Part shown: positions 1,933 through 33,124 of the stretch, piece after piece | How positions within the stretch are numbered: the stretch's first letter is position 1 | How the letters are laid out: every line of letters begins with the position of its first letter | From: Mytilus edulis | Lineage: Eukaryota | DNA length: 64,000 nucleotides | Reading direction: 5' to 3' | NCBI RefSeq assembly: GCF_963676685.1 | Contig: NC_092352.1 | Coordinates: forward strand, 1,922,001-1,986,000 | Translations under genes and position numbers: made by a program | The notes under the pieces: generated by a model | The model's input: the letters and a program-made list of their open reading frames with translations, nothing else | Database searches by the model: none | Told to the model about the DNA's origin: nothing

Positions 1933-4900
1933 TTGATAAAGCTAAATGCATGCATGAAGGGTGATATTCTTAAAATAATTTCTTATAATTGTCAAGGTCT
2001 TTATACAAAGGAGAAACGGAGAGATGTTTTGAACTATTTAAAGTCAAAGAATTTTAATATATACTGTCTTCAGGACACACATTTTACAGAACAAGATGAA
2101 TTAAACATTAAAAATCAGTGGAAGGGAGAATGCCTTTTCAATTCATTTACATCCAATCAGAGAGGTGTGGCCATCTTTTTTAATGAAAACTTTGATCTTC
2201 AAATTCACAAAGTTAAAAAAGATGAGGGGGGAAATCTTCTTGGATTGGACATTACAATTGAAGAACAAAGAATTACCTTAGTAAATATTTATGGGCCAAA
2301 TGTAGACACTCCTTGCTTTTATCAAAAGGTGGCAGACATTATTGAGGAATTTGATAACCAATCTTGTATTCTTTGTGGTGATTTTAACCTCATTCAAAGT
2401 TTTAATCTTGACACCCATAATTATGTTAATATCAACAACCCAAAGTCTAGAGAAAAAGTATTACAGCTAATGGAAGACTTTAATCTAGTTGATCCATTTA
2501 GAGAATTATACCCCAATTTGAAAAGATTTACTTGGAGGAAAAAAAAACCCTTTAAACAATCTCGTTTAGATTTTTTTCTGATTTCTGATAATATTTTTCA
2601 CTTTGTTAGCGATGTTAAAATTGATAATAGTTACAGGTCTGATCATTCACCTGTGGTCTTTTCTTTCAAGAATAATGAATTTATAAAAGGCAGAGGCCTT
2701 TTGAAGTTTAATAATTCCCTTCTTCATGATACTGACTATGTTAAAGAGATAAAAAACCTCATAAGTATAGTAAAAGAACAATATGCTGTCAAGATATATA
2801 GAGATGAAAATTTACAAAATATTGACAACTCTGAAATTGAATTTACTGTTGATGACCAGTTATTTTTAGAAACTTTACTCACAGAAATACGCGGTAAAAC
2901 TATTTCATATGCCTCTTATAAAAAAAAGGCGGGTATAAAAATTGAAAATGAAATTATTTCAAAATTAAAACAATTAGAAGAAAATGCTCTAACAGTAGAA
3001 AATCTGGAAGAGATTGATCAGAAAAAAGCAGAACTTAAAATTTATAGACAAAAGAAGGTTCAGGGACAATATGTTAGGTCAAGAAGTCAGTGGATTGAAG
3101 AAGGAGAAAAACCTACCAATTTTTTTTTAAATCTAGAGACTAGAAATTATATAAATAAGACTATTCAAAAACTGACTTTAGAAAATGGTGTTATAGTGGA
3201 AGAACAAAAAGAAATCTTAAATCAGACAAAGGTGTTTTATGAAAAACTTTATAGAAAACAAGATTGTTTGAAAAAGGTTGATTTAACATGGGACTTTTGT
3301 TATGACGAGATACCGAAGCTTAGCGAGGATGAAAAGCAGTTATTGGAGGGAAATATTATTTTTTCTGAATTAACTGCAGCATTAAAAAGGATGAAAAATA
3401 ACAAAAGTCCGGGGTCTGATGGTTTCACTGCAGAATTTTTCAAATTTTTTTGGATTGATATTGGTAAATTTGTCCTTAGATCTATAAATTTTGGATATGG
3501 GAAGGGCCAAATGTCTGTCACCCAGAGGCAGGGAGTGATTACATGTATTCCAAAAGATGGTAAACCAAAACAATTTCTTAAAAATTGGAGACCTATTACT
3601 CTACTAAATTCTACATATAAATTGGCATCAAGCTGTATAGCAGAGAGAATAAAATCTGTTTTGTCAAAATTAATAAGTTCGGATCAAACTGGTTTTGTTC
3701 CAGGTAGATATATAGGCGAAAATTGTCGTTTAATATATGATATTTTACATTTTACTGAAGAAAATAATATTCCAGGAATTCTCTTGCTGATTGATTTTGA
3801 GAAGGCATTCGATTCCATATCGTGGTCATTTCTTTATGATACATTAAGATATTTTAATTTTGGTGAATCCGTTATATCCTGGGTTAAAACCTTCTATAAC
3901 AATATAACAGCTGCGGTGACACAAAACTGTTGTTTGTCAGAATTCTTCACTATAGAGAGAGGCTGTAGACAGGGAGATCCTTTATCCCCTTATATTTTCT
4001 TGCTATGTGCAGAAATATTAGGCATTTTGGTAAGAAATAGTAGGGAGATAAAGGGTATTACTATAGATGATACAGAATTTGTACTTTCTCAATATGCGGA
4101 TGATACATCATTGATATTAGATGGCTCGCCAGAATCGCTCGATGCATCTCTTCGTGTTCTCTAATTGTATGCTGAAATCTCGGGACTTAAGATTAATATA
4201 GAAAAAACAAGTGTTATTTGGATAGGTAGCAAAAAACATAGTCAGGATCAAATTTGTGTAAAGTGGGGATTGAAATGGGGCTCCAGTACATTTAAGTTGC
4301 TTGGAATTACGTTTTCAGTCGACCTAGATAGAATGATTAATTTAAATTATAGGCCAGTTTTAGATAATATAGACAACACTTTGAAAAAATGGTCAAAACA
4401 GTATCTCACCCCCTTTGGAAAGATTACCATTTTAAAAACTTTGGTCATAGCTAAATTAAATCATCTGTTTCTATCTATCCCTAGTCCAGATGAGAATATG
4501 TTACGTAATTTAACAAATAAAATGTATGCTTTTATCTGGGATAATAAACCAGATAAGATCAAGCGAGATCTTTTATGTCAAGATTATTATAAGGGTGGTT
4601 TTAAAATGCTAAATTTAAAAGCTTTTATACAGGGACTAAAACTTACATGGGTAAGACGTCTGTATAATTCGAACTCAAAGTGGGTGAAATTAGTCTCTAT
4701 TGTGGAGCAAATAAATTTTATTGAAATAAGTTATATTGGGCCTATTAAAAGGTCAACAAATAAATTTTGGCAAGAGGTTTTTGATGCTTGGAAAACCCTT
4801 AATCAAATTAGAAAACCAAGATGTATTGATGAAATTCTATCGTATTCTTTATGGGAGGTAGAAAATTTTAAAATTGGTGGTTCAAGAGTCTACTATAAAA

Positions 4901-5736
4901 ACTGGGCAAATGCGGGAATTTGGACAGTACAAGATTTGTTAGATGACCAGGGCAAAGTTATGTCATTTCAAAATTTCCAACAATTATATCAATTTAGGCC
5001 AAATATTTTACATTATTATGGAATAGCGCACTCGCTTAATGAGTGGTTAAACACGATTAATATTGAAATAAATGAGAAAAAAATTCATGCAATACTACCT
5101 TTTAACATAAGTATCTTTTTTGAATCAAAAAAAGGTTCAAGGGAAATGTACAAAGTATTGAATGAAAAATATGTTACATTTGCTGCAAAGGAAAAATGGG
5201 AGAACCATCTTAATATGACTGGTATTAACTGGAAAAAAATACACACTTCGTGTACAAAATATAGTAAAAGCACTAAGCTTTGCTGGTTCCAATATAGAAC
5301 TATCCATAGAATTTTGGGAACTAATTCACTACTTTACAAGATGAAAATAAATAGCAGTAACATATGTACATTTTGTAAAGAAGGACCAGAGACCATAGAA
5401 CATTTATTTTGGAGCTGTCCGATGGTTGCCAGTCTCTGGCATGCACTTAACATCTGGATTTTTGAAATGACAAGTATTGAACTGCCTTTGAATATTATGA
5501 TTATTTTATTTGGTATCTACGAAAATGTTAAATTGAATTTTGTTAAAAATAAGATTATTCTACTTTCAAAATACTACATTTACAGAACAAAATTACAAGA
5601 AGTTTTGCCAAACCTAAATGCTTTAAAAAACTATTTAAAGGAACACTTGAACTTAGAAAAATACATTTCATTTAAAAACCTCTCTGTAGAGGAATATAAC
5701 AAATACTGGAGTCCCTGGGCCCCTATCATAGAATAA
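1933..5736 (+). pseudogene. L1/Tx1-clade LINE ORF2 (APE endonuclease + RT + C-terminal zinc-binding domain), broken by one in-frame TAA at 4162-4164
   Basis: APE motifs: SYNCQGL, LQDTH, NIYGPN, GDFN, SRLDFFL, SDH. RT motifs: KSPGSDG, NWRPITLLN, DFEKAFD, RGCRQGDPLSP, QYADD. Zinc motif: CTFC...ETIEHLFWSC. ORFs 1933-4164 and 4165-5736 are in the same frame and separated only by the stop codon. Confidence 0.95.
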
Positions 5737-5812
5737 ATAATAAATGTTAAAATTTGCTTGAAACACTACTTATGTATTTTGCAAGAACACATAAGATTTC
5801 AATGTTATATAT

Positions 5813-5972
5813 AGATTCTTACATTGTTAGCAGTGGATTATCGTGTTTCTCCAATCGAGATAGTTAAATTATGAAATTTTAAGTCTGAGCCTTGGCGAGG
5901 ACTTAAAATTTCATAATTTAACTATCGAGATTGGAGAAACACGATAATCCACTGCTAACAATGTAAGAATCT
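5813..5972. repeat. Long terminal hairpin of the Crypton (73-bp arms, 71/73 paired, 14-nt loop)
   Basis: Arms 5813-5885 and 5900-5972 are reverse complements except for one GA/GA dinucleotide. The loop is tgagccttggcgag. Confidence 0.95.
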
Positions 5973-6307
5973 GTTTCTCTAATGACCAAAAAACCTATTT
6001 TAGTTTCATAAAAAAATAAATTCTCCCAACCATGCCTTAAACTACGTCATCCGGTGTTACGCGCCAGCATATTTATACGCACATAAGTCTTTTGTTTAAT
6101 TTCAAGTATTATCTAAAAAAACCACAATCCAATTCAATTTGAATTCCAACATATTCATATTTAATCACAAAAAGAACATTAAAATAGTTTTTATCAATTG
6201 AACGTTGATAAGAAAAAAGAACTTTTTTCGCGTAGAATGAAGTTCACCGCTCACTGAAATAAACACGAGGAGAATGAATGAAGTTCAAAACGGCTGACCA
6301 CAGTAGT

Positions 6308-6760
6308 TTATTCATCTTGTGAACTGTCACTCTCGATAACAAATCGGCGTTTCTTCTGAGGAGGCTGAACTGATGGTGATGTATTGTTAATATTGATATT
6401 AAATGTCCCTCCATAAATAGGTGCCCCAAAGATATAGTTCATTCCTGAACGCGGTGCATCGTGACTTTGGCTTTGCCCAACCACGAGTTGTGTCTCTGTT
6501 TGATGAACTGCTTGACGTCCCATCGTAACCGTCCTCGTTGTCTGCGAAGACTGTATTTGTTGCTCATTTTCATCCTGGTTACCTAAGATGCATTGACGTC
6601 CCATCGTAACCGTCCTCGTTGTCTGTGAAGACTGTATTTGTTGTTCATTTTCAGCCTCATGATCCTGGTTACCTAAGATGCATTGGGCTATCTGTTTATG
6701 TTTCTGAGGGTTCAGTTTTGAGTAAGTGGTGATACTCTGTATGTTTTTGTGTCCAGATAT
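6308..6760 (-). CDS. Crypton tyrosine recombinase, exon 3 (GH and catalytic Y)
   Basis: Acceptor ttttttag|ATA TCT GGA CAC. It encodes ISGHKNIQSITTYSK..., a duplicated QCILGNQD...MGRQ segment, and a GAPIYGGTFNININ tail. The spliced CDS is 1222+143+453=1818 nt (605 aa) and open throughout. Confidence 0.88.
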   Translation of the reverse strand: MSGHKNIQSITTYSKLNPQKHKQIAQCILGNQDHEAENEQQIQSSQTTRTVTMGRQCILGNQDENEQQIQSSQTTRTVTMGRQAVHQTETQLVVGQSQSHDAPRSGMNYIFGAPIYGGTFNININNTSPSVQPPQKKRRFVIESDSSQDE

Positions 6761-7020
6761 CTAAAAAATCAGTAAAAAAATCATAAACTTTCTAGTATGA
6801 ACCATATGTGAATTTTTGTGAAATAGTGTGGATCTGAGGAAGAAGTAAAGGTGGACTAGAATTTAGAATTGTGAAATATTAAATAAGGGTGTCTCATTGA
6901 CAGATTGAGGGGTTCTGATCCTGGATCCAACTTACTGTTTTGTCAAATTCCTGTATCCGCTTACACTATGTATGTAACTTTGTAAGCAATTCTCATTTTT
7001 TGTAAATTCTTGTGTCCCCC

Positions 7021-7152
7021 CTAGTCCAAATAATTATGACGTCTCGTTAGGCTATTTTTTAATATTTTTTTTGGGACGCTGTACATTGATGTACGACGTC
7101 CAAAAAATTATAAAAAAATAGCCTTTCAAGACGTCATAATTATTTGGACTAG
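7021..7152. mobile_element. 132-bp palindromic MITE in Crypton intron 2
   Basis: TIR ctagtccaaataattatgacgtc / gacgtcataattatttggactag. The direct repeat tgtccccc lies at 7013-7020 and 7153-7160 (8 bp; 9/10 bp if the termini are TAG..CTA). Confidence 0.85.
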
Positions 7153-7299
7153 TGTCCCCCTAGACTTCCTAACACAGTACAGTACAATAATTTGACTAAC
7201 ATGTGTCATGCTCTCAAAGAGTTAGCAATTCAGGGTTGCACTTAGACCCTAATGAGATCCACAAATAAAAAATAAATAATCCGACAATTTTAAAAAGGA

Positions 7300-7663
7300 T
7301 TTCTTCAATTTTTGTGCTATTTTTACATTTCCTGACCGGTGTGAGAAAAAATATTTCTCCTCACTAGTGAAAAATCTGTTCTTGGCAAGTGATTGATTGA
7401 ATTTCAATGGTTCAAATTTTGCCGTTATATAGCCTTTTTGTGCTAATGCGGCGTCAGCTGTGTGGCGTAAAGCAACTAACAATGAATCAATGAATTTAAT
7501 CTTTGATAAAATTAGAGAAACAAATTCCACCGATATGTGTTTCCACTTTCAACAGTTAAATTTTTAATATTGAAAAGCTCAGCAAGCCTTGTGTTTTAAA
7601 TTGTAAAATTTAACGTTAACTGTCTCGAGTGGAGAATTTCGTAACACTCTGTGAAATCTATAT
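7300..7663 (+). mobile_element. Non-autonomous Crypton-related element, inverted relative to the autonomous copy
   Basis: The 5' part is the reverse complement of 11340-11430. It has an internal aaaattagagaaa, a hairpin with an agctcagcaagccttg loop, and ends in gaaatctata. Confidence 0.75.
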
Positions 7664-7796
7664 TTTCATATCTCCAGTTACAAAATTTTCTTATCAGATG
7701 ATTGTTCAAAATTCAATCATGACAAAAATTGAGTGGATGAAAACTGTAATTAATGTAGTCAAGTGGTGTTGTAGTAATATTTTTATGATTAATAAC

Positions 7797-7939
7797 CTGT
7801 TTGATACGATTATGTTCAATTCCCTCATCGTCAAGCTTCTGAAGCATAAACCTTCTAGCTGAATGGTTGGTTAGGCGCCTGTTTGTATTGTCATCTAGAG
7901 GTTGGTTCTCATCATTTTGATTGTGTTCTTTAATAATAC
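7797..7939 (-). CDS. Crypton tyrosine recombinase, exon 2 (HxxR motif)
   Basis: Boundaries ttgtag|GT ATT ... AAA CAG|gttatt; 143 nt, phase 1 to 0. It encodes ...RRLTNHSARRFMLQKLDDEGIEHNRIKQ and is absent from the ORF track. Confidence 0.88.
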
Positions 7940-8484
7940 CTACAAGTATATGTACAGTATTAATAATTAAAAGCAGTGATTAAAAGAACATGCTGGTTAT
8001 ACACATGTACAGTGTTTATATGGGGAAATTCAAATATGGTATCAAATTTTCTTGATTTCTTCTGAATTTCCTATTGTGACGTCATAAAAAAAGACAACCA
8101 TGATGACGTCACTTACATGTATGCCTTCAAATTGATATTTTATTGTGTGTTTTTCTATGTTGTGATGTTATACTATTCAGTTTTGTGTCAGTAAAAGGGA
8201 GAAGGTTTGGTACCATTAAAACATTTAATCCCTCTGCAAATGTTTGCACCTGTCCTAAGTCAGGAATCTGATGAACACAACAGTAGTTGTTGTTTGTTTA
8301 TGCAATTTATACATGTTGCTTGTTTCACTTGTTTTTATAAAAGACCATTGGTTTACCCGTTTGAATGAATTTACACTTTAAATTTGGGCTCTTTATAGCT
8401 TGTGTTATCCAAGGCTACATAATGAAGGCTGTACCTTGACCTGTAATGGTTTACTTTTATAAATTGTAATTGGATTGAGAGTTG

Positions 8485-8730
8485 TTTCTCTAGTTTTCGT
8501 GCTATTTTCACCTTTCTCGACCGGTGTGAGAAAAATATTTCTCGTCTCTAGAGAGAAATTTGTTCTTGTTCTCAGCAAATGATTGGTTGAATTTCAATTA
8601 TGACATCAATTTTTTTTGCTTTCTTCTGAATTTTCTATTGTGACATCAGGAAACTAGGTGAATTTAAAAATTTAACTGTTTGAGTGGAGAAATATTGTAA
8701 TACAGTCTTGATGCAGTTGTGAAATCTATA
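8485..8730 (+). mobile_element. Internally deleted non-autonomous Crypton-related element inserted in a common dispersed repeat
   Basis: It runs tttctctag...gaaatctata. Removing it restores gagagttg+tctcattggcactcat, seen uninterrupted at about 34931 (agagttgtctcattggcactcat). Confidence 0.8.
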
Positions 8731-8821
8731 TCTCATTGGCACTCATACCATATCTTCCTATGCATGTACATTGTACCAATAAAGAGCACAACTTTCAGCA
8801 AATCTCTCAAAAGGAATATCT

Positions 8822-8937
8822 CGTGTATTATATTTCTCCAGTCTTGACAGTTAAATTTTAAATATATTCAAAATCTTGGCACGCCTTGCATTTTAAATTT
8901 TAAAATTTAACTGTCTCTCGTGGAGAAATATAACACG
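8822..8937. repeat. Isolated degraded copy of the Crypton-type hairpin
   Basis: The sequence reads gtgtattatatttctccagtcttgacagttaaatttt ... aaaatttaactgtctctcgtggagaaatataacac. Confidence 0.7.
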
Positions 8938-9188
8938 TAATATGTGTCTTTGTGGCATGTACAAATGTTTTATGCTTGCGTTAAAACTAACATGTAATCT
9001 TTTTTTTTAGGTTAAAGAATAGAGTTTATTTTGGATTTTTATCAACCTTAAACAAAATTTTAAGACGGCAGGGTTGATGAATTTTCTGGATATATCGAGA
9101 ATTTTTTATAAAAAAAGGGGGGAAACATATCAACCAAAGTATTGAGTATTTGACACAGATTATTCTACATGTACATGTATTTAAACTA

Positions 9189-9260
9189 TCCTTGTTAGTA
9201 CAATGGTCAGTACACTCATCTACAGATGAGGGATCTGGGTTCGATTCCTGGACTTGGAGT
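9189..9260 (+). pseudogene. tRNA-derived (SINE-head-like) degenerate sequence
   Basis: It has an A-box-like tagtacaatggt, a stem ctcat/atgag, and a B-box ggttcgattcc. The anticodon loop is irregular. Confidence 0.4.
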
Positions 9261-9539
9261 TTACATGTAGAGTCAAAATGTGTCTATTTACTCTTGCTTA
9301 AATTTGAATAAAAATGTACAAGTAACTTAATTTGACCATTGTTGAAATTTTAATTATCAACATGTTGTTCACAGTTCTACCTTCATATTGGTAAATACTC
9401 AATGATGACTTTCATTTTTTTTTTAATTTCAAAACTAAACTGATTTATAAAAGAAACAGATTAAACAGTTATCTGTCACTGTTGACAAATAGGTTTCTCA
9501 AATCTTTCTCCAATCAATGAATTTGGGAAAACCTGCACA

Positions 9540-9930
9540 TTTCTTGAGTGGTGTGAGTAAACTATTTTTCACCACTAGTAAAATATCTGTTCTAAATCAA
9601 AATTGATTATGACGTCATCATGTTTTGTTTTTTTCAGAATTTTCATATTGTGACGTGGGGGAAAAAAGGCGACCTTGCCTGATGACATTGCATATATTAA
9701 AGGAACACAAGTTTCTAAAAATCTTTGAAAAAGAATGATACAAATCATTAAACAAACTAATTTCGACACTATAAGTTATAACTCGTGTATTACAATATTT
9801 CTCCACTCTCGACAGTTAAATTTAATTATTTAAAAAGCTCGGCAAGCCTCGCTCTTTAAATAATAAAATTTAACTGTCTCGAGTGGAGAAATATTGTAAT
9901 ACACTTGTTGCAGTGTATGAATCAATATAT
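9540..9930 (+). mobile_element. Non-autonomous Crypton-related element with a well-preserved hairpin (9785-9904) in intron 1
   Basis: The motif ggtgtgag...tttttcaccactagt is shared with the 7340 and 8522 copies. The hairpin loop is agctcggcaagcctcgct. Confidence 0.75.
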
Positions 9931-9974
9931 ACATTAATAACAAGTAAATGTACCTGTTTACAATATTTTATTAC

Positions 9975-11196
9975 CTGTATTTAAAGCCATTTTCTTCATG
10001 AATTTTCCTAATTTATTGATACCAATTCTTTGTGCCTTAAACCAAAGGGCTGACTTGTCAGGGTTGTTGTTCTCCTGAATGTAGAAGGGATCTTCAGGCT
10101 TACTATATTTTGTAGGTCTTTTTGACTTGTAAAGCTTGTATGCAGCTACAGGACATTTTGTTTGATCAGTTGTGGCCCAGGCCCTTTGAGGAATTTCTCT
10201 TGTGTTTTTCAGATTTGCTCCAGTTCTTGTTTTAGTATTTCTCTCGTTCATTTGCAAGTATTCCTGACTTTTAGAGTCTTTACATAGTTGGACATCCCCC
10301 CATGTCATCTGATAATGTTCAGTTACACCACGTAGGCCAAAATATATTGTGTTAAAAAACCAGAGAGTGTGCAATAGAGTTGTAGGATTGGACAAGCCCA
10401 GCTGCCCAGTTTTAAACATTGCTTCAATGTCATCATCAGTGAGTGTTTCAGCTCTTTTATCACCATTTCCTTTACCCATTTTTTTTAACGCTATCTGTTT
10501 TGCCGTAAGAACATCTCTGGTTTTAGCAAATTCTACACTTTTACTTAATTCATAGCCATAATCATTGCTCCTCAGTATTCTATCAAATGAACACATCATT
10601 CCACGTAGTGAGGATGGCTCATACTCTTCTCCATCAGTTTTTCTCACAGAGAAAAAGTACTGACATAAAAGACTGTTTAATTCTTCAGGTGGAATTTTAT
10701 AAATTTCTCTTTTTTCATTTTTCTGTTGTAGGAACTGTGTAAGTGTGCGCATATCACTTATATTTTTTCTGGCAGTGCCTTGATTTTCCTGATCTTTAAC
10801 AAATTGTTCTACAGTTGATTCATCAACTGGAACAAACTGTCTTGGTTTTGATGCTTTTGAACTAGGCTTTTGTGTAGGTGCTTGAGGTGGTGCTGACACA
10901 TTTACAGGAGCTTCATTTGGCGTTTTATCAACTTCATTCAACTCTGGCTCAAACAGATACAGGAGTCCATCAGGAACATGTGGTGGGGAGTCATGTTCTA
11001 ATGGGTGTGTGACTGTTCTGTCAGGCTCAGAAATAATGTCAAACCTGTATCTGGCCTCAGTTACAAGTTTACCACCTTCTAGCTGAATTTCCCACAACGG
11101 AAACCCAAAGTTGTCTGTTTTACCTTTTATAACTCCCATTTGCCCCCCTACAAGTCTGACTTTTTGTCCCCTTGTCAAGTTTTCGTTGAGCGACAT
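9975..11196 (-). CDS. Crypton tyrosine recombinase, exon 1
   Basis: DUF3504/ZMYM/KCTD1-like motifs: RKTDGEEYEPSSL, FGLRGVTEH (catalytic R), ERNTKTRTG, KCPVAAYKLYKSKRP, WFKAQRIGINKL. The exon ends at ACA G|gtaata (phase 1). Confidence 0.9.
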
Positions 11197-11430
11197 TTCT
11201 TTCTTATAATGAAAATTGCAGACGACGAGTTCTCGATAGTTTGTTTACACGTTACTAAGATGTTTATCGAAGAAGGCCGAGAATTCTTGTTAACCTTGAA
11301 AAAGTAGTTCCGACAGGTCACGAACTTTGATTATCCAATCAATTGCTGAGAACAAATTTCTCTCTAGAGACGAGAAATATTTTTCTCACACCGGTTGAGA
11401 AGTGTGAAAATAGCTCGAAAATTAGAGAAA

Positions 11431-11608
11431 AGATATTTATTGATTTTCAACCTATTATAGCACCATCATATTTATTCAATTGTTGTTTTATTATTTAATA
11501 CTTCCTTTGTGTGAAAATGTCATTCTGTATACCTTTGTTCATACATGTTGTGCTAATCTATTTGTTACAATAAAGAAAATTCATTATAAAAAACAAAAAA
11601 CAAAAGAA
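11431..11608 (+). mobile_element. Probable displaced 3' UTR and A-rich tail of the first L1, split off by the Crypton insertion
   Basis: aataaa at about 11569 is followed by an A-rich tail (aaaaaacaaaaaacaaaag). ORF2 at 5736 has no such tail before the Crypton starts at 5810. Confidence 0.55.
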
Positions 11609-28333: not shown

Positions 28334-29914
28334 CTGAAAATATACAAACATAGTCATCAGAAAGAATATACTTTTTTTTAATAACTAATGGTGTTTAAAC
28401 TTAGATTCATCTTTTAAAATCAGTTAGTTGTCCCTGATGAATGAAAAAAAAACATTGAGTGAGCAAGCTTACAAACCCCAGGCCCCACACAGAACTAATA
28501 TGAAAAACCTCCCCCACTTCCATTACAGACTGTTTTTATTTAGGAAGGTTTCAATGAGTGAAAAAGGCTCACAACTGCATTAAGTCTAGTTTTAAAACAG
28601 TCATTTTGATTTTTAAATCACCTAAAAAGCTTGAACAATAATTAATTGAGTCATATTCAGTCTTTCAGTTCTGTTCACTTGTAGTCAAGTCAGTACTAGT
28701 ATGCAGGGATCTCCATGGCCCCGCCATCGTTCAAATGTCTTGCGCCATCGTCAAATGACTCGCGCCATCGTTAAACCTTCATCGTTTTTTGTAGCCCAAC
28801 GCCATTTTTTTTTATCAAATATAATCAAATGCATGTAATTGCATAACCCTTAGGCTTTTTATGTTATAATCCAATACAGTTCTAACGCCTGAGGGATATC
28901 CGATTAAGATCGCTAATCATTTGTACCTGAGCTTGTACAGGTAGATCAACAAACCAGACAGGAGAATACTATCTGAGGATAGACGATCCATTTGTCGAAT
29001 TAATCAACTAAGTTTCAGCAAATGATTATGATAATTTAGATTAAATAAATTAATTAATAATCCAGTTACAAAGAAAACAGTTTAACAAGTTGAACATGTG
29101 CTTTATTTTGACTTACGCATTCAGCATCCCCCTTTTTTTAAGAAGTACAAAATAAGACGCAAAACAGTAAATATTACTTCATCGCAAATAACTCGAGTAC
29201 TGCTGTAACGATAATTTAGAATTACTTTAAAAGTTTAAAAGTAAAAATTTTAATATTTCCAGTAAAGAAATATCGTATTGTAATTCCGAATTCATTTAGT
29301 ATATTACAATCAAATTGATACATCCGCGTTTCCGGTTTCTATTCAGACTCGAAAGATGCATGTTGCACAGCAGCAATTTGCCAGATAAAGTCATTAAAAA
29401 CCTTTTCATTTGTCAACGTTTGCTTTACAAAAAGTTTTATATTTTCATCTTCGGTAACAGATGATCATGCCACTAATATAAGTTGATGATAAGGACAATA
29501 CTTTTTCCAAAATCTTATTCTTATAACTCTCCTTTTACTTTTTCAAATCCATTGGCCCTGTCTTTGTTTTTTCAATAAAACAACATTTATCAAAAAACGA
29601 GAATGTGTCCATAGTACACGGATGCCCCATCCGCACTATTATTTTTGTTCAGTGGACTGTGAAAATGGGGTAAAATCTCTAAGTTGACATTAAAAATAGA
29701 AAATTATATCATAAGGAACATGAGTATTAAGTTTCAAGATGATAGGACTTCAACATGTTCAAGTTCATCAAAAACTACCTCGACCAAAAACTTTAACCTA
29801 AAACGGGACAGACGGACGAATGAATGAACAGATGCACACACCAGACAACATAATGCCCATAAATGGAGCATAAAAATTCATAAGCCCTGTTGTTTTGTGT
29901 TTCCAATAACTCAC

Positions 29915-30032: not shown

Positions 30033-30463
30033 CTGAAAAGACAAAATATTGCATTTCTAATATGAAGAGTCAGATATTTCTTCAGTTGTACAACAAAATT
30101 TCAGGATACTGAAGATTAGTTCTTGTTGCATAATTTAACATTAATTGTATGATGTTAAATTGCACACTACCAAAGTTGAAATAGTACTATTTAAAATTGT
30201 TAGTTTATACATGGGAAACCTGAAAATGGCATGTCCACTGCACTTTACATCTGATAAGTAAACTATATTCTCCAAGAATCCTGCATAACTAAAGGCTAAT
30301 GGAACGATATTATAAATTGCTAAGCCCCAATAACCCCTTGCAGAATAATTCATCAATGGTTCAGAACAACCTGCTAAGCACATCACATCAGATGGCACTG
30401 TTTCAACTCAAATTTGGCTGGAAATGTAACATCACTTTTGGTAATGAAATTCATAAATATATT

Positions 30464-31206
30464 TATAGTTTATCGTTGATCATCTCAACAAGATTGATAT
30501 TCTCACTTGAGCCGGGACGGCAAAAGCGATGAAAGGCAATCGAGTTGAGATGATCAATGATAATATGTTTATCGCTATTTTACCTATGACAACGTTGTCA
30601 ATTTCATGACAATTTCGTTAGCAACGCCACGTGCCTGTTTAGTTTCTAGCAATAATTTTCCATCTCAAGTGAGAAGCATGATATGAAAATTATCACAAAA
30701 CAAGAATGTGTCCATAGTACACGGATGCCCCACTCGCACTATCATTTTCTATGTTCAGTGGACTGTGAAATTGGGGTCAAAATTATAATTTGGAATTATA
30801 ATTAGAAAGATCATATCATAGGGAACATGTGTACTAAGTTTCAAGTTGATGTAACTTTAACTTCATCAAAAACTACCTTGACCAAAAACTTTAACCTGAA
30901 CTTCGCACTATCATTTTCTATGTTCAGTGGACCATGAAATTGGGGTCAAAACTAGAATTTGGCATTAAAATTAGAAAGATCATATCATGGGGAACATGTG
31001 CACTAAGTTTAAAGTTGATTGGACTTCAACTTCTTCAAAAACTACCTTGACCAAAAACTTTAACCTGAAGCAAACGGACGCACAGACGGACGCACAGACA
31101 GACGGACGAACGAACGGAGGCACAGACCAGAAAACATAATGCCCCTCTACTATCGTAGGTGGGGCATAAAAAAGATCAAAGGAAAAATGCACAAAATAGC
31201 GATAAA
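30464..31206. mobile_element. Second non-autonomous Crypton-type family, split by a Helentron-like insertion
   Basis: It starts with tatag and has a hairpin at about 30470-30563 with a gagccg..cggc loop. Internal tttatcgctatttt (30568-30581) is the exact inverse of terminal aaaatagcgataaa (31193-31206). Confidence 0.75.
30697..31172. mobile_element. Helentron/HINE-like element
   Basis: It runs aaacaagaatgtgtcc..gtacacggatgcccc, two internal units, (GACG/GAAC)n, and the palindrome atgcccctctactatcgtaggtggggcat. It is inserted in an A-run. Confidence 0.8.
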
Positions 31207-31697: not shown

Positions 31698-32198
31698 AAA
31701 AACAAGAATGTGTCCAAAGTACACGGATGCCCCACTCCCACTATCATTTTCCATGTTCACTGGACCGTGAAATTGGACAAAAAATATAATTAGGCATTAA
31801 AATTAGAAAGATAATATCATAGGGAACATTTGTACTAAGTTTCAAGTTGATTGGACTTCAACTTCATCAAAAACTACCTTGACCAAAAACTTTAACCTGA
31901 AACATGCACTTTCATTTTCTATGTTCAGTGGACCGTGAAATTGGGGTCAAAAGTTTAATTTGGCTTTAAAATTAGAAAGATCATATCATAAGGAACATGT
32001 GTACTACGTTTCAAGTTGATTGGACTTCAACTTCATCAAAAACTACCTTGACCAAAAACTTTAACCTGAAGCGGGACAGACGGACGAACGAACGAACAGA
32101 CGAATGAACGAACAGACGGACGGACGAACGAACGAACGAACGGACGCACAGACCAGAAAACATAATGCCCCTCTACTATCGTAGGTGGGGCATAAAAA
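31698..32198. mobile_element. Helentron/HINE-like element of the same family (older copies at 29595-29875 and 25020-25203)
   Basis: It has the same termini, internal units, microsatellite and palindrome as 30697-31172. Confidence 0.8.
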
Positions 32199-33124
32199 TA
32201 ACATCATAATGAAAATATGGACTAAAGTACCACAACTTCATGGTAAACTAAACCTTGAATTTTTGTATTGGACAGACTGGAATGTCTACAACCATATGCC
32301 CCCTCCCTACAAACCAAGCAGATGAGTCTTGAATCTTTCTTCTTAATACAATGTGCTTACAGGAAACAATATACATGGTATAAGATGTATTGCCCAACTG
32401 GCCAAACAGGCAAAATCCATCCTATATTAACTTTCCTTTTAATTAGTGTACATAAATAAAATTTTCTGACGAAGTTAAGATTAGGTTAAGTTTGTTCTTG
32501 GCCAACAGGCAGCCACTTATTTACTGACATCAGACACGCGAAGCCCATATTTTGACTATTTTATTTATTATGTCTGTTTAGTTCACGCATCATTGTAATT
32601 ATAGCGGAATTTGATGAGACTATCGTACAAAGTGAGAGGTTTAGCGCTATAAAACAAGGTTTAATCCACCATTTTCTACATTTGAAAATGTCTGTACCAA
32701 GTCAGGAATATGTTAGTTCTTGTCCATTCGTTTTTAATGTGTTTTGTCATTTGATTTTGCCATGTGATTAGGGACTTTCGGATTTGATTTTCCTCTGAGT
32801 TCAGTATATTTGTGATTTTACTTTTTACCCCTTTGTTCAACGAGGAAGTAATACATACAAATGATCAAGTCTTTGGTTTGACCTGTGTAAGCATCAAACT
32901 TATTTTGTTGAGACCATGAGACCGCAGACATGGTTCACCGTAGATTATAAATCATATCACATAAACTTATGTGTCATATAACTAGTAAAAACAAGACAAG
33001 ATTCCTACATTTGGCACTGGTACTACAACATTATGTCAGTATCATTCAGTAAAAATAATTCCTCAATTATCTCCCTTATAGTTCTTCCTTCAATCTATCT
33101 TTTAACTTGTTTTTAATCACCTAC

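Follow-up and report, generated by a model that had tools for sequence, protein, structure and literature searches.

Strand-specific tandem G-A mismatches are conserved in the terminal hairpins of a mussel Crypton lineage

Cryptons are elements that encode only a tyrosine recombinase, and include CryptonA, whose DUF3504-type domain is also found in the derived ZMYM/QRICH1/KIAA1958 genes (Goodwin 2003; Kojima and Jurka 2011). They are described as lacking terminal inverted repeats and as having 4-6 bp terminal direct repeats, taken as the crossover sites (PMC3212892; PMC13465315). How Cryptons move has never been studied experimentally, and their ends are described as featureless apart from a few repeated bases. 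In bacteria, the tyrosine recombinase IntI recombines the folded bottom strand of the integron attC site, an imperfect palindrome of 60-140 nt whose two strands fold almost alike and whose unpaired features and purine skew set the choice of strand (PMC5027507). The IS200/IS605 and other HUH single-strand transposons also use subterminal imperfect hairpins that are recognised on one strand only, with irregularities in the stem distinguishing the top from the bottom strand. Small purine mismatches have been described in two further settings. In the left-end hairpin of the parvovirus MVM a GA doublet faces a GAA triplet (PMC1185569), and in DNA hairpins of the AUTS2 promoter repeat the block 5'-CGAG-3' facing 3'-GAGC-5' has been shown by NMR to form tandem sheared G:A pairs and to be thermally stable (PMC10085684).

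The window analysed here is a stretch of 64,000 nucleotides of the Mytilus edulis genome (contig NC_092352.1), and all coordinates are numbered from its first letter. The 160-nt palindrome at 5813-5972 is the left terminus of a 5.6-kb autonomous DUF3504 Crypton-type element (5810-11430; family A), written here in the orientation of the strand that carries GA and reading TATAGATTC...ATTAGAGAAA. At least five other places in the genome match almost its whole length at 97.5-99.5% identity, some with internal deletions. A DNA contig of run X1 joins 5809 directly to the sequence at 11431-11450, which is the empty site, and so shows that the element is insertion-polymorphic and has no target-site duplication; the boundaries have a 1-nt (A) ambiguity, leaving an overlap of at most that length. 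An ATAT target duplication, assumed at first, was rejected on the basis of this contig, and the flanks of 13 family C and 9 family B copies show no consistent repeat. The short direct repeats expected at both termini of a Crypton are therefore absent. There are no classical terminal inverted repeats either, although there is a terminal palindrome at one end, and one base inside it a 10-nt box, TTTCTCTAAT (5974-5983), which is complementary to the last 10 nt of the element, the right terminus ATTAGAGAAA (11421-11430). The box is conserved in families A-D and F, while family E has a different pair of letters in the same arrangement.

The element carries a spliced tyrosine-recombinase gene on the minus strand (6308-11196), with exon 1 at 9958-11196, an HxxR box near 7865 followed by an H...Y region, and the stop at 6308. 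RNA contigs join 7797-7941 to 6596-6760. Exon 1 matches DUF3504 (E 8e-29) and QRICH1, and a 586-aa M. galloprovincialis protein is 100% identical over 94% of it. A search for homologous proteins gave relatives from oyster, clam, hemichordate and coral, and relatives carry PF00589. The assignment as a tyrosine recombinase rests on these matches and boxes rather than on a residue-by-residue mapping of the full R-H-R-Y tetrad. The only reverse transcriptase-like ORF (4165-5736) lies outside the element.

The arms of the terminal hairpin, 5813-5885 and 5900-5972, are 73 nt long and 97% complementary. They pair everywhere except at one site, where G5857 A5858 faces G5927 A5928, each inside atcGAgat. 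This site, termed site 2, reads C-GA-G on both arms (5856-5859 and 5926-5929). The apex module tGAgc-cttg-gcGAg (5886-5899) can form a second GA/GA, site 3, in which 5887-5888 faces 5897-5898, closed by a 2-3 bp G:C clamp and a small loop. T5886 is private to this copy, as all other copies and the DNA contigs of run X1 have C there, giving CCGAGCC..GGCGAGG. The observation made in the original prediction, that the single mismatch in the stem, the possible second one at the apex and the TC/TC pattern of an inverted copy all place GA on one strand, is confirmed in every statement on the sequence, and extends further than was first seen.

The hairpin at 9780-9909, which had been described as the inverted copy at 9785-9904, carries TC/TC on the plus strand at 9809-9810 with 9879-9880 and at 9839-9840 with 9849-9850, which is GA/GA on the minus strand. 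It is not a second end of this element, but the end of a nested, inverted, C-like non-autonomous relative in an intron (9536-9931, minus strand; also delimited as 9928-9536). Two further sets of nested, inverted and decayed relatives lie on the minus strand, at 8485-8951 (hairpin 8810-8951, with a right-end-like piece at 8485-8661) and at 7299-7661 (hairpin 7514-7661, right end 7299-7394). A parvovirus-like reading, in which a 4-kb unit would lie between inverted hairpins at 5813 and 9904, was considered and rejected, since the unit shared by all copies is 5810-11430 and the inner hairpins belong to nested elements.

Elsewhere in the window, a family E non-autonomous element of about 750 bp (30454-31206, plus strand) has a 99-nt-type hairpin at 30457-30566. 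The AA/GA that had been reported at the equivalent site of the copy at 30470-30563 is present, with AA (30490-30491) facing GA (30542-30543), and at the apex GA (30509-30510) faces AA (30522-30523). In 20 other copies of that family the left arm reads CAACGAGATTG, so that the family state is GA/GA; both AA are CpG decay of this copy, that at 30490-30491 being a G-to-A change. The post-hairpin box TTTATCGCTA (30568-30577) is complementary to the right end TAGCGATAAA (31197-31206).

In all, six hairpin families share one layout, two of them autonomous (A and F) and four of them groups of short non-autonomous elements (B, C, D and E) with thousands of copies. Each has two or three tandem purine mismatches, always on the same strand relative to the element. 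Sites 2 and 3 are 5'-C-GA-G-3' facing 5'-C-GA-G-3' in families A, B, C, D and F, as is site 2 in E, whereas in E the apex reads T-GA-G facing C-GA-A, so that the closing pair has changed in a compensatory way and the pyrimidine-GA-purine rule is kept. A third site, site 1 (stem positions 19-20), is dispensable, being paired in families A and F, AA/GA in C and CA/GA in B, and so not every block is needed. In A and F the strand that carries GA is antisense to the recombinase gene, as was seen in this element and in a 62%-identical paralogous element (L107).

This is more than chance. In 43 copies from five families the main stem is 93.8% paired and 25 pairs (20 + 4 + 1 over the three main-stem helices) show changes on both sides, while site 2 (columns 45-46 with 119-120) and site 3 (75-76 with 88-89) are standard pairs in 0-2 of the 43 sequences. 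None of 500 shuffles reached the observed covariation score, and slid-partner controls gave 34-45% paired. Among family majorities, computed for the 160-nt hairpins only, 38% of stem columns vary and 24 of 70 pairs switch between two Watson-Crick types, but the 16 columns of sites 2 and 3 and their closing pairs stay fixed, apart from CpG decay in the two old families. The flanks of the blocks also co-vary: ATCGAGAT; CTCGAGAC with GTCGAGAG; and GGTAG with CTACC in F. This is consistent with structure rather than letters being kept, although most of the compensatory changes lie on a few deep branches (A/B/F against C/D), and the number of independent events is far below the number of cells counted. 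As all the families are homologous, the shared state could be shared ancestry, the mismatches having persisted from an ancestor without selection on them. This reading is already disfavoured and would seem unlikely, since the 16 fixed columns include hypermutable CpGs, and a naive independence estimate gives P between 5e-4 and 0.02.

Genome-wide, 463 hairpins have the canonical orientation relative to the inner flank, about 15 have one arm converted to a Watson-Crick pair, and 1 (L119) has a flipped inner segment, so there is no flip/flop. In 12 loci the left arm, and in 3 the right arm, has been converted by exactly the two bases that restore pairing. These loci are scattered over subfamilies and at most two look related. 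One copy, L006, shows such a conversion together with a 34-nt templated duplication. The arms do therefore meet in vivo, but correction does not spread: arm-templated conversion of GA to TC is found in about 3% of copies, even in families under 1% diverged, yet none of the six families carries a converted site 2 or 3. Similarly, the CpG inside CGAG decays quickly to CAAG or TGAG in old copies but is intact in every active lineage, including young families of 99% identity. It is also possible that the mismatches are kept merely as palindrome breakers, of whatever base identity, because perfect long palindromes are unstable or toxic in duplex DNA through cruciform cutting or replication slippage, or because a perfect hairpin RNA would trigger silencing. 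The mismatches do sit at the apex and mid-arm, where they would hinder extrusion, and rearranged copies exist, namely L006 with its duplication, L033 with a deletion inside a nested hairpin, and L119. However, this would predict arbitrary mismatches of arbitrary polarity, whereas those observed are always G-A/A-G with C:G and G:C (or T:A) closing pairs, on one strand, in six families, and tandem sheared GA stabilises rather than weakens the fold of that strand (PMC10085684). This explanation is regarded as improbable.

Support from other species is thin. Of 64 hits in a pattern scan of metagenomes, about 60 are chance matches without a palindrome, one is a family C copy (L174), and three (L144, L156 and L175) come from one other assembly, JYMV01. 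These three are old hairpins with CAAG or TGAG facing CGAG at the expected sites, for which right ends could not be found, and they offer weak support only.

A structure acting in RNA was also considered, in which a transcript with the sense of the GA strand would fold and serve as a small-RNA precursor or a protein-binding RNA. Tandem GA pairs are common in functional RNAs, and Rfam gave matches to microRNA-precursor models, but these are all below threshold (best 58 bits against a gathering score of 83) and occur on both strands, as for any long hairpin. RNA contigs cover the gene at a depth of 15-54 but the hairpin only at about 1, and those of the gene stop about 170 nt short of the hairpin, which argues, weakly, against a role in the mRNA. 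Raw RNA reads on the unique parts were too few to call a strand. The RNA able to form GA/GA would be antisense to the gene, the short elements have no promoter of their own, and the exact placement of the hairpin at the recombination point would be left unexplained. This possibility is considered the least likely of those examined.

A more serious alternative, though still an unlikely one, is that CGAG, repeated head-to-tail four to six times along one strand, is a short duplex recognition word for an extra DNA-binding domain of the recombinase or for a host factor, like the arm-type sites of lambda attP, with the mismatch only a by-product of placing direct repeats on a palindrome. Consistent with this, the sites share the same four letters on the same strand, in families A-D and F the four inner copies are spaced 30, 10 and 30 bp apart, close to whole helical turns, and the protein carries a QRICH1/DUF3504 N-terminal part of unknown DNA specificity. 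In addition, element F inserted next to a resident hairpin that presents the TC form on the same strand, which suggests that the target is read as duplex and indicates that the target side at least tolerates the other polarity. On the other hand, only four bases are constant and everything around them co-varies with the opposite arm, family E breaks the word at the apex (TGAG facing CGAA) while keeping the pyrimidine-GA-purine geometry, and its spacing of 19 nt is not a whole number of turns. Nor does this reading explain why about 70 further pairs are kept complementary. A directional double-strand protein motif is nevertheless not excluded.

The interpretation in the original prediction, that retention of the mismatch in diverging stems implies selection on a single-stranded structure like the extrahelical bases of attC, is supported only in part. 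The mismatches are kept at the same places and on the same strand while the stems co-vary, the motif is exactly that shown by NMR to form tandem sheared G:A pairs, and only the strand antisense to the recombinase gene can form it. The case for selection is strengthened by the recurrent arm-templated conversions that no family carries at site 2 or 3, by the CpG that is intact in every active lineage, and by the compensatory change of the closing pair in family E. Selection on a strand-specific fold is the best reading, and is held to be somewhat more likely than not. In this view the sites are CGAG blocks (C:G, sheared G:A, sheared A:G, G:C), and when the strand reading 5'-TATAGATTC...ATTAGAGAAA-3' folds on itself, as single-stranded DNA or as one arm of an extruded cruciform, the blocks would stack like ordinary pairs and the stem would be continuous, while the complementary strand would have pyrimidine-pyrimidine TC/TC bubbles at the same places. 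Besides the small apex loop and the asymmetric base of the stem, the blocks would be among the few features that tell the two otherwise identical folds apart, and may fix which strand, and so which orientation, the recombination complex uses, either by favouring that fold or by being read directly. The recombinase would cut and join at the foot of the hairpin (GAGAAA|TATAG) without duplicating the target. The geometry fits a folded site, as the hairpin sits exactly at the terminus and the box just inside it can pair with the other terminus. However, ViennaRNA with DNA parameters, which treats the sites as generic 2x2 loops, did not separate the strands, the difference running from -0.4 to +3.3 kcal/mol in favour of the GA strand across families (0.8 in A, -0.4 in C and F). 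It was rejected as a test because 2x2 loops are generic in that model, and any energetic asymmetry rests on published oligonucleotide work rather than on this computation. The anatomy, the polarity, the covariation, the conservation and the polymorphic insertion without target duplication are established by the analysis, whereas sheared pairing at the sites, folding in vivo as the active form, binding of the fold, strand choice as the function of the blocks, any effect of theirs on transposition, and single-strand exchange are inferences from sequence and from precedent.

A bolder reading, possible but doubtful on present evidence, is that the whole element moves through a folded single-stranded intermediate. 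The GA strand would fold into the terminal hairpin, the 10-nt box would pair with the other end, and the recombinase would exchange that strand alone at GAGAAA|TATAG, with the CGAG blocks as strand selectors and replication finishing the job. This would explain the lack of a target duplication and how 420-bp derivatives reached thousands of copies, and would be the first animal counterpart of integron attC or CTX-phage single-strand recombination.

No paper describing the feature was found. The lineage is young and insertion-polymorphic, with a sharply defined cis-element (a hairpin, two CGAG blocks and a 10-nt closing box), an intact recombinase as judged from sequence, and very short natural non-autonomous partners, which together make the mechanism directly testable. 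If the fold is the substrate, recombination of folded single strands by tyrosine recombinases would extend from bacteria to animals, and would supply a compact, orientation-defined recombination site and a biological role for a DNA motif so far known mainly from oligonucleotide studies. Even if that reading fails, the data give a case for purifying selection on a non-Watson-Crick DNA element, in-genome evidence that the arms of a palindrome template each other's repair, and a correction to the textbook description of Crypton termini.

Compared with the described systems, the element shares with integron attC sites a tyrosine recombinase, an imperfect palindrome with a few purine-rich features that differ between the strands, and insertion without target duplication. 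In attC, however, these features are extrahelical bases and an unpaired central spacer, with conserved R/L boxes (RYYYAAC/GTTRRRY) close to the cleavage point, while here there are no bulged bases but symmetric 2x2 G-A/A-G blocks that lie 44 and 74 bp from the crossover, much further than the attC extrahelical bases lie from their cleavage site. The termini read TATAGATT and TTAGAGAAA, with no AAC/GTT core, the recombinase is a eukaryotic DUF3504 protein, and single-strand exchange is at present only a hypothesis. The strand-specific blocks, the lack of a target-site duplication and a stem completed across the ends are only compatible with recombination of one folded strand. The four-base unit is identical to the CGAG block of the AUTS2 promoter repeat, but there the blocks are consecutive repeats in a promoter, and here they are isolated at fixed positions in a 73-bp Watson-Crick stem at a transposon end. 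With canonical Cryptons the lineage shares the coding of only a tyrosine recombinase with a DUF3504-type domain, but it differs in its terminal palindrome of 100-160 nt, its 10-nt end-to-subterminal complementarity, its overlap of 1 nt at most, and its abundant MITE-like derivatives of 420-750 bp. The IS200/IS605 and other HUH transposons likewise insert without duplication, but use an HUH nuclease, small hairpins at both ends and guide-sequence base triples, in place of a tyrosine recombinase and one long hairpin at one end. The parvovirus MVM likewise has a small conserved purine mismatch in a long terminal hairpin, which there makes the two arms functionally unequal (PMC1185569), but that bubble is asymmetric (2 against 3 nt) and works as a spacer in the duplex junction origin for an HUH nickase, and parvoviral or poxviral telomeres flip and flop, whereas in the mussel hairpins the loops are symmetric and the polarity is fixed.

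The palindrome at 5813-5972 has 73-nt arms that are 97% complementary, and the only mismatch within the arms is G5857 A5858 facing G5927 A5928, both inside atcGAgat. At the apex, (t)GAgcc-tt-ggcGAg allows a second G-A/A-G pair of pairs to form between 5887-5888 and 5897-5898. T5886 is private to this copy, as every other copy and the DNA contigs of sequencing run X1 read C at this position. The hairpin at 9780-9909 shows TC/TC at both of the corresponding places on the + strand, which is GA/GA on the minus strand, while the copy at 30470-30563 shows AA/GA. The original prediction, which had noted a single GA/GA mismatch in the stem, a possible second one at the apex, the complementary pattern in the inverted copy and AA/GA at the equivalent site at 30470-30563, was therefore correct in each of its statements on the sequence.

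At least five other places in the 1.37-Gb assembly match the window over about 5809-11431 at 97.5-99.5% identity, some of them with internal deletions. The unit encodes a spliced tyrosine recombinase on the minus strand. Exon 1, an open reading frame at 9958-11196, matches DUF3504 (E 8e-29) and QRICH1 and is 100% identical over 94% of its length to a 586-aa protein of Mytilus galloprovincialis. An HxxR box lies near 7865, and RNA contigs of two runs join 7797-7941 to 6596-6760 and cover exon 1. The hairpin is the very end of the element, with the alignments of copies breaking immediately before (A)TATAGATTC. No stretch of N was met in the sequence. When sequencing data were compared with 5,901 nt, a DNA contig of run X1 was found to run from the left flank at 5809 straight into AGATATTTATTTATTTTCAA, which is the sequence at 11431-11450 with one difference. 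This is the empty site. It shows that the 5.6-kb insertion is polymorphic, fixes the element at 5810-11430 with a 1-nt (A) ambiguity, and shows that insertion between TTATA and AGATATT took place without a target-site duplication. One base inside the hairpin lies TTTCTCTAAT (5974-5983), which is complementary to the last ten bases of the element, ATTAGAGAAA (11421-11430). Near-identical copies exist outside the source individual and perhaps outside the species, since runs X11, X5 and X12-X13, which comprise a second organism label and mollusc/gill metagenomes, hold 84-85% of the sampled words of the element. A 523-aa open reading frame on the + strand at 4165-5736, with a zf-RVT domain (the tail of a LINE-type retrotransposon), ends about 75 bp before the left end of the Crypton.

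The hairpins at 9780-9909, 8810-8951 and 7514-7661 are not ends of this element. They belong to at least three decayed non-autonomous relatives (7299-7661, 8485-8951 and 9536-9931) nested in the introns of the recombinase gene, all inverted relative to the host element and present in the sister copies too. The first begins only about 27 bp after the end of exon 1, raising the question of whether these insertions created or enlarged the introns. Two further repeats lie inside the element. At 7021-7152 there is an unrelated palindrome with 51-nt arms (CTAGTCCAAATAATTATGACGTC...) of very high copy number, with a word depth above 40,000 in run X1; the same repeat flanks a family C insertion at locus L061, and its mismatches are not of the GA/GA type. 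The intronic stretch 8064-8851 has a DNA word depth of up to 300,000 and many RNA reads on both strands, and is another very abundant repeat, in which a segment of 261-266 nt (8467 to 8731) is skipped in many reads.

Searches of the genome gave six families that share one grammar: flank | TATAGATT..hairpin..AATCT G (10-nt box) ... (10-nt complement ending AAA) | flank. Two are autonomous, namely family A, which is the element described here, and family F, whose recombinase is 62% identical, whose hairpin lies at 2712-2872 of locus L107 and whose gene is again on the opposite strand. The remainder are non-autonomous: family B, of about 420 bp, with 1074 first-look candidates; family C, also of about 420 bp, with 2226 candidates and copies up to 99.8% alike; the older D1/D2, with 210 candidates; and family E, of about 750 bp, with 1731 candidates and a 99-nt hairpin. 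In family E the ten-base box and its partner have quite different letters, TTTATCGCTA at 30568-30577 and TAGCGATAAA at 31197-31206, showing that it is the arrangement and not the sequence that is kept. The family E element in the window, at 30454-31206, carries an internal tandem duplication (30734-30900 and 30903-31069, 92% alike) and an ACGGACGCACAGACGG-type simple repeat near 31070-31130, and partial relatives of its interior lie nearby at 31699-32226 and 29587-29858.

Counting from the foot of the stem there are three mismatch sites, at positions 19-20 (site 1), 45-46 (site 2) and 75-76 (site 3), the last next to a 3-4 bp G:C clamp and a 2-5 nt loop. Sites 2 and 3 read C-GA-G on both arms in A, B, C, D1, D2 and F. 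Family E also has two sites, CAAC-GA-GATTG facing CAATC-GA-GTTG and CTT-GA-GCC facing GGC-GA-AAG. The AA at 30490-30491, which had been taken as the mismatch of that family, is a G-to-A change of this one copy. The apex of family E has a T:A closing pair in place of C:G, a compensatory change that keeps the pyrimidine-GA-purine context. Site 1, on the other hand, is GA/GA in D1, AA/GA in C, CA/GA in B and Watson-Crick in A and F, and is therefore dispensable. A scan of metagenomes gave three old, related hairpins, 71-77% alike, in contigs of another assembly from another organism (WGS JYMV01; loci L144, L156 and L175), with CAAG or TGAG facing CGAG at sites 2 and 3, which is compatible with decayed blocks but is weak support. 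Their post-hairpin box is GTTTCTCCTAT instead of GTTTCTCTAAT, and L175 has a (GA)n run at the apex.

To investigate whether this conservation exceeds chance or inheritance, the full stem was specified on an alignment of 43 copies, with the three sites placed in a separate bracket class. The main stem is 93.8% paired, and 25 pairs show changes on both sides. None of 500 shuffles reached the observed covariation score, and sliding the partners by 1-3 columns dropped pairing to 34-45%. In contrast, site 2 forms a standard pair in 0 and 2 of the 43 sequences and site 3 in 2 and 0. Among family majorities, 24 of 70 stem pairs switch between two Watson-Crick types and 38% of stem columns vary, while the 16 columns of sites 2 and 3 with their closing pairs do not vary, except for G-to-A at the CpG in small samples of the two old families; intact D-type copies are common in the genome-wide list. 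A naive independence estimate gives P of about 0.02 for the eight G/A columns and about 5e-4 for all sixteen, although most of the double changes lie on a few deep branches, so that the number of independent events is modest. That the mismatches merely break up a palindrome, with the identity of the bases being arbitrary, is quite unlikely, given that their identity and polarity are uniform. It also seems unlikely that CGAG is a directional binding word read in the duplex, as only four bases are constant and family E breaks the word but not the geometry.

Two further lines point to selection. The CG inside CGAG is hypermutable here, with old copies showing CAAG or TGAG at high frequency, and yet every lineage that amplified recently has CGAG. 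In addition, exact two-base conversions that restore pairing at site 2 recur (L006 and among L108-L120), with 12 loci in which the left arm is changed from GA to TC and 3 in which the right arm is changed, against 463 canonical hairpins under the same pattern. The conversions are spread over C-type and several D1-type subfamilies at unrelated insertion sites, and at locus L006 (1509-1712) such a conversion is joined to a 34-nt templated duplication. A specific dinucleotide replacement cannot be ordinary point mutation and means that the arms serve as templates for each other in vivo, by templated repair or template switching. Since correction happens at a rate comparable to point substitution, even in families under 1% diverged, master copies should have lost the sites unless corrected copies transpose poorly. 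None of the six families carries a corrected site 2 or 3. The retention of the CpG and the failure of the conversions to spread to a whole family make mere inheritance of the mismatches an improbable explanation.

The purines lie on the strand that reads 5'-TATAGATTC...ATTAGAGAAA-3', with only one locus (L119) having the inner part of the hairpin inverted relative to the flank. There is no flip/flop as in parvovirus or poxvirus telomeres. In both autonomous families this strand is antisense to the recombinase gene. An RNA structure would appear very unlikely, as RNA contigs cover the gene but not the hairpin and Rfam gives only sub-threshold microRNA look-alikes on both strands.

Chemically, 5'-CGAG-3' facing 3'-GAGC-5' is the 'CGAG block', for which NMR on DNA hairpins shows a C:G pair, two sheared G:A pairs with cross-strand purine stacking and a G:C pair, with melting temperatures well above physiological temperature. 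It is a case of the known pyrimidine-GA-purine rule (PMC10085684). The complementary strand can offer only T-C/C-T. The nearest-neighbour model in ViennaRNA treats both as generic 2x2 loops and so barely separates the strands, with -78.7 against -77.9 kcal/mol in family A, +0.4 the other way in C and F, and 3.3 in E. This computation is uninformative rather than contradictory.

The analysis itself establishes that a hairpin lies exactly at the crossover point, that its pairing is kept by compensatory evolution, that the blocks are strand-specific, conserved and stackable, that a ten-base stem can bring the other end to the foot of the hairpin, and that insertion occurs without a target duplication. 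Targets also resemble the joined ends. Four of 22 family C flanks end in GAGAA, and element F, the right end of which is identical to that of the family C short elements, inserted into a resident inverted D1 element (L107:2660-2720 and 7585-7760) precisely at ATTAGAGAAA|C-AGATTC, a mimic of the junction and the complement-strand image of the joined ends. What is inferred, from sequence alone, is that the GA strand folds, as single-stranded DNA or as an extruded arm, and that the blocks would keep that stem continuous while the complementary fold has two pyrimidine bubbles. In this view the asymmetry, together with the loop and the TAT/G internal loop at the foot, would let the recombination complex choose one strand and one orientation. 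This would parallel the way in which the unpaired features and purine skew of attC do so for integron integrases (PMC5027507), and on balance it is considered somewhat more likely than not. The proposal that the retained mismatches reflect selection on a single-stranded structure, like the extrahelical bases of attC, is thus partly supported: selection on a strand-specific feature is well supported, whereas a single-strand, attC-like function remains a plausible inference.

Papers on Cryptons describe elements without terminal inverted repeats and with 4-6 bp terminal direct repeats, and do not mention hairpins (PMC3212892; PMC13465315), and a literature search for Cryptons in bivalves found no description either. 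The element is a Crypton by its protein, but it lacks the short direct repeats and adds a terminal palindrome. By the inferred mechanism it would work like the attC class but is not a member of it, having no extrahelical bases and no AAC/GTT core. The MVM bubble, in which a GA doublet faces a GAA triplet, is a conceptual relative, but it is asymmetric and acts in duplex form (PMC1185569).
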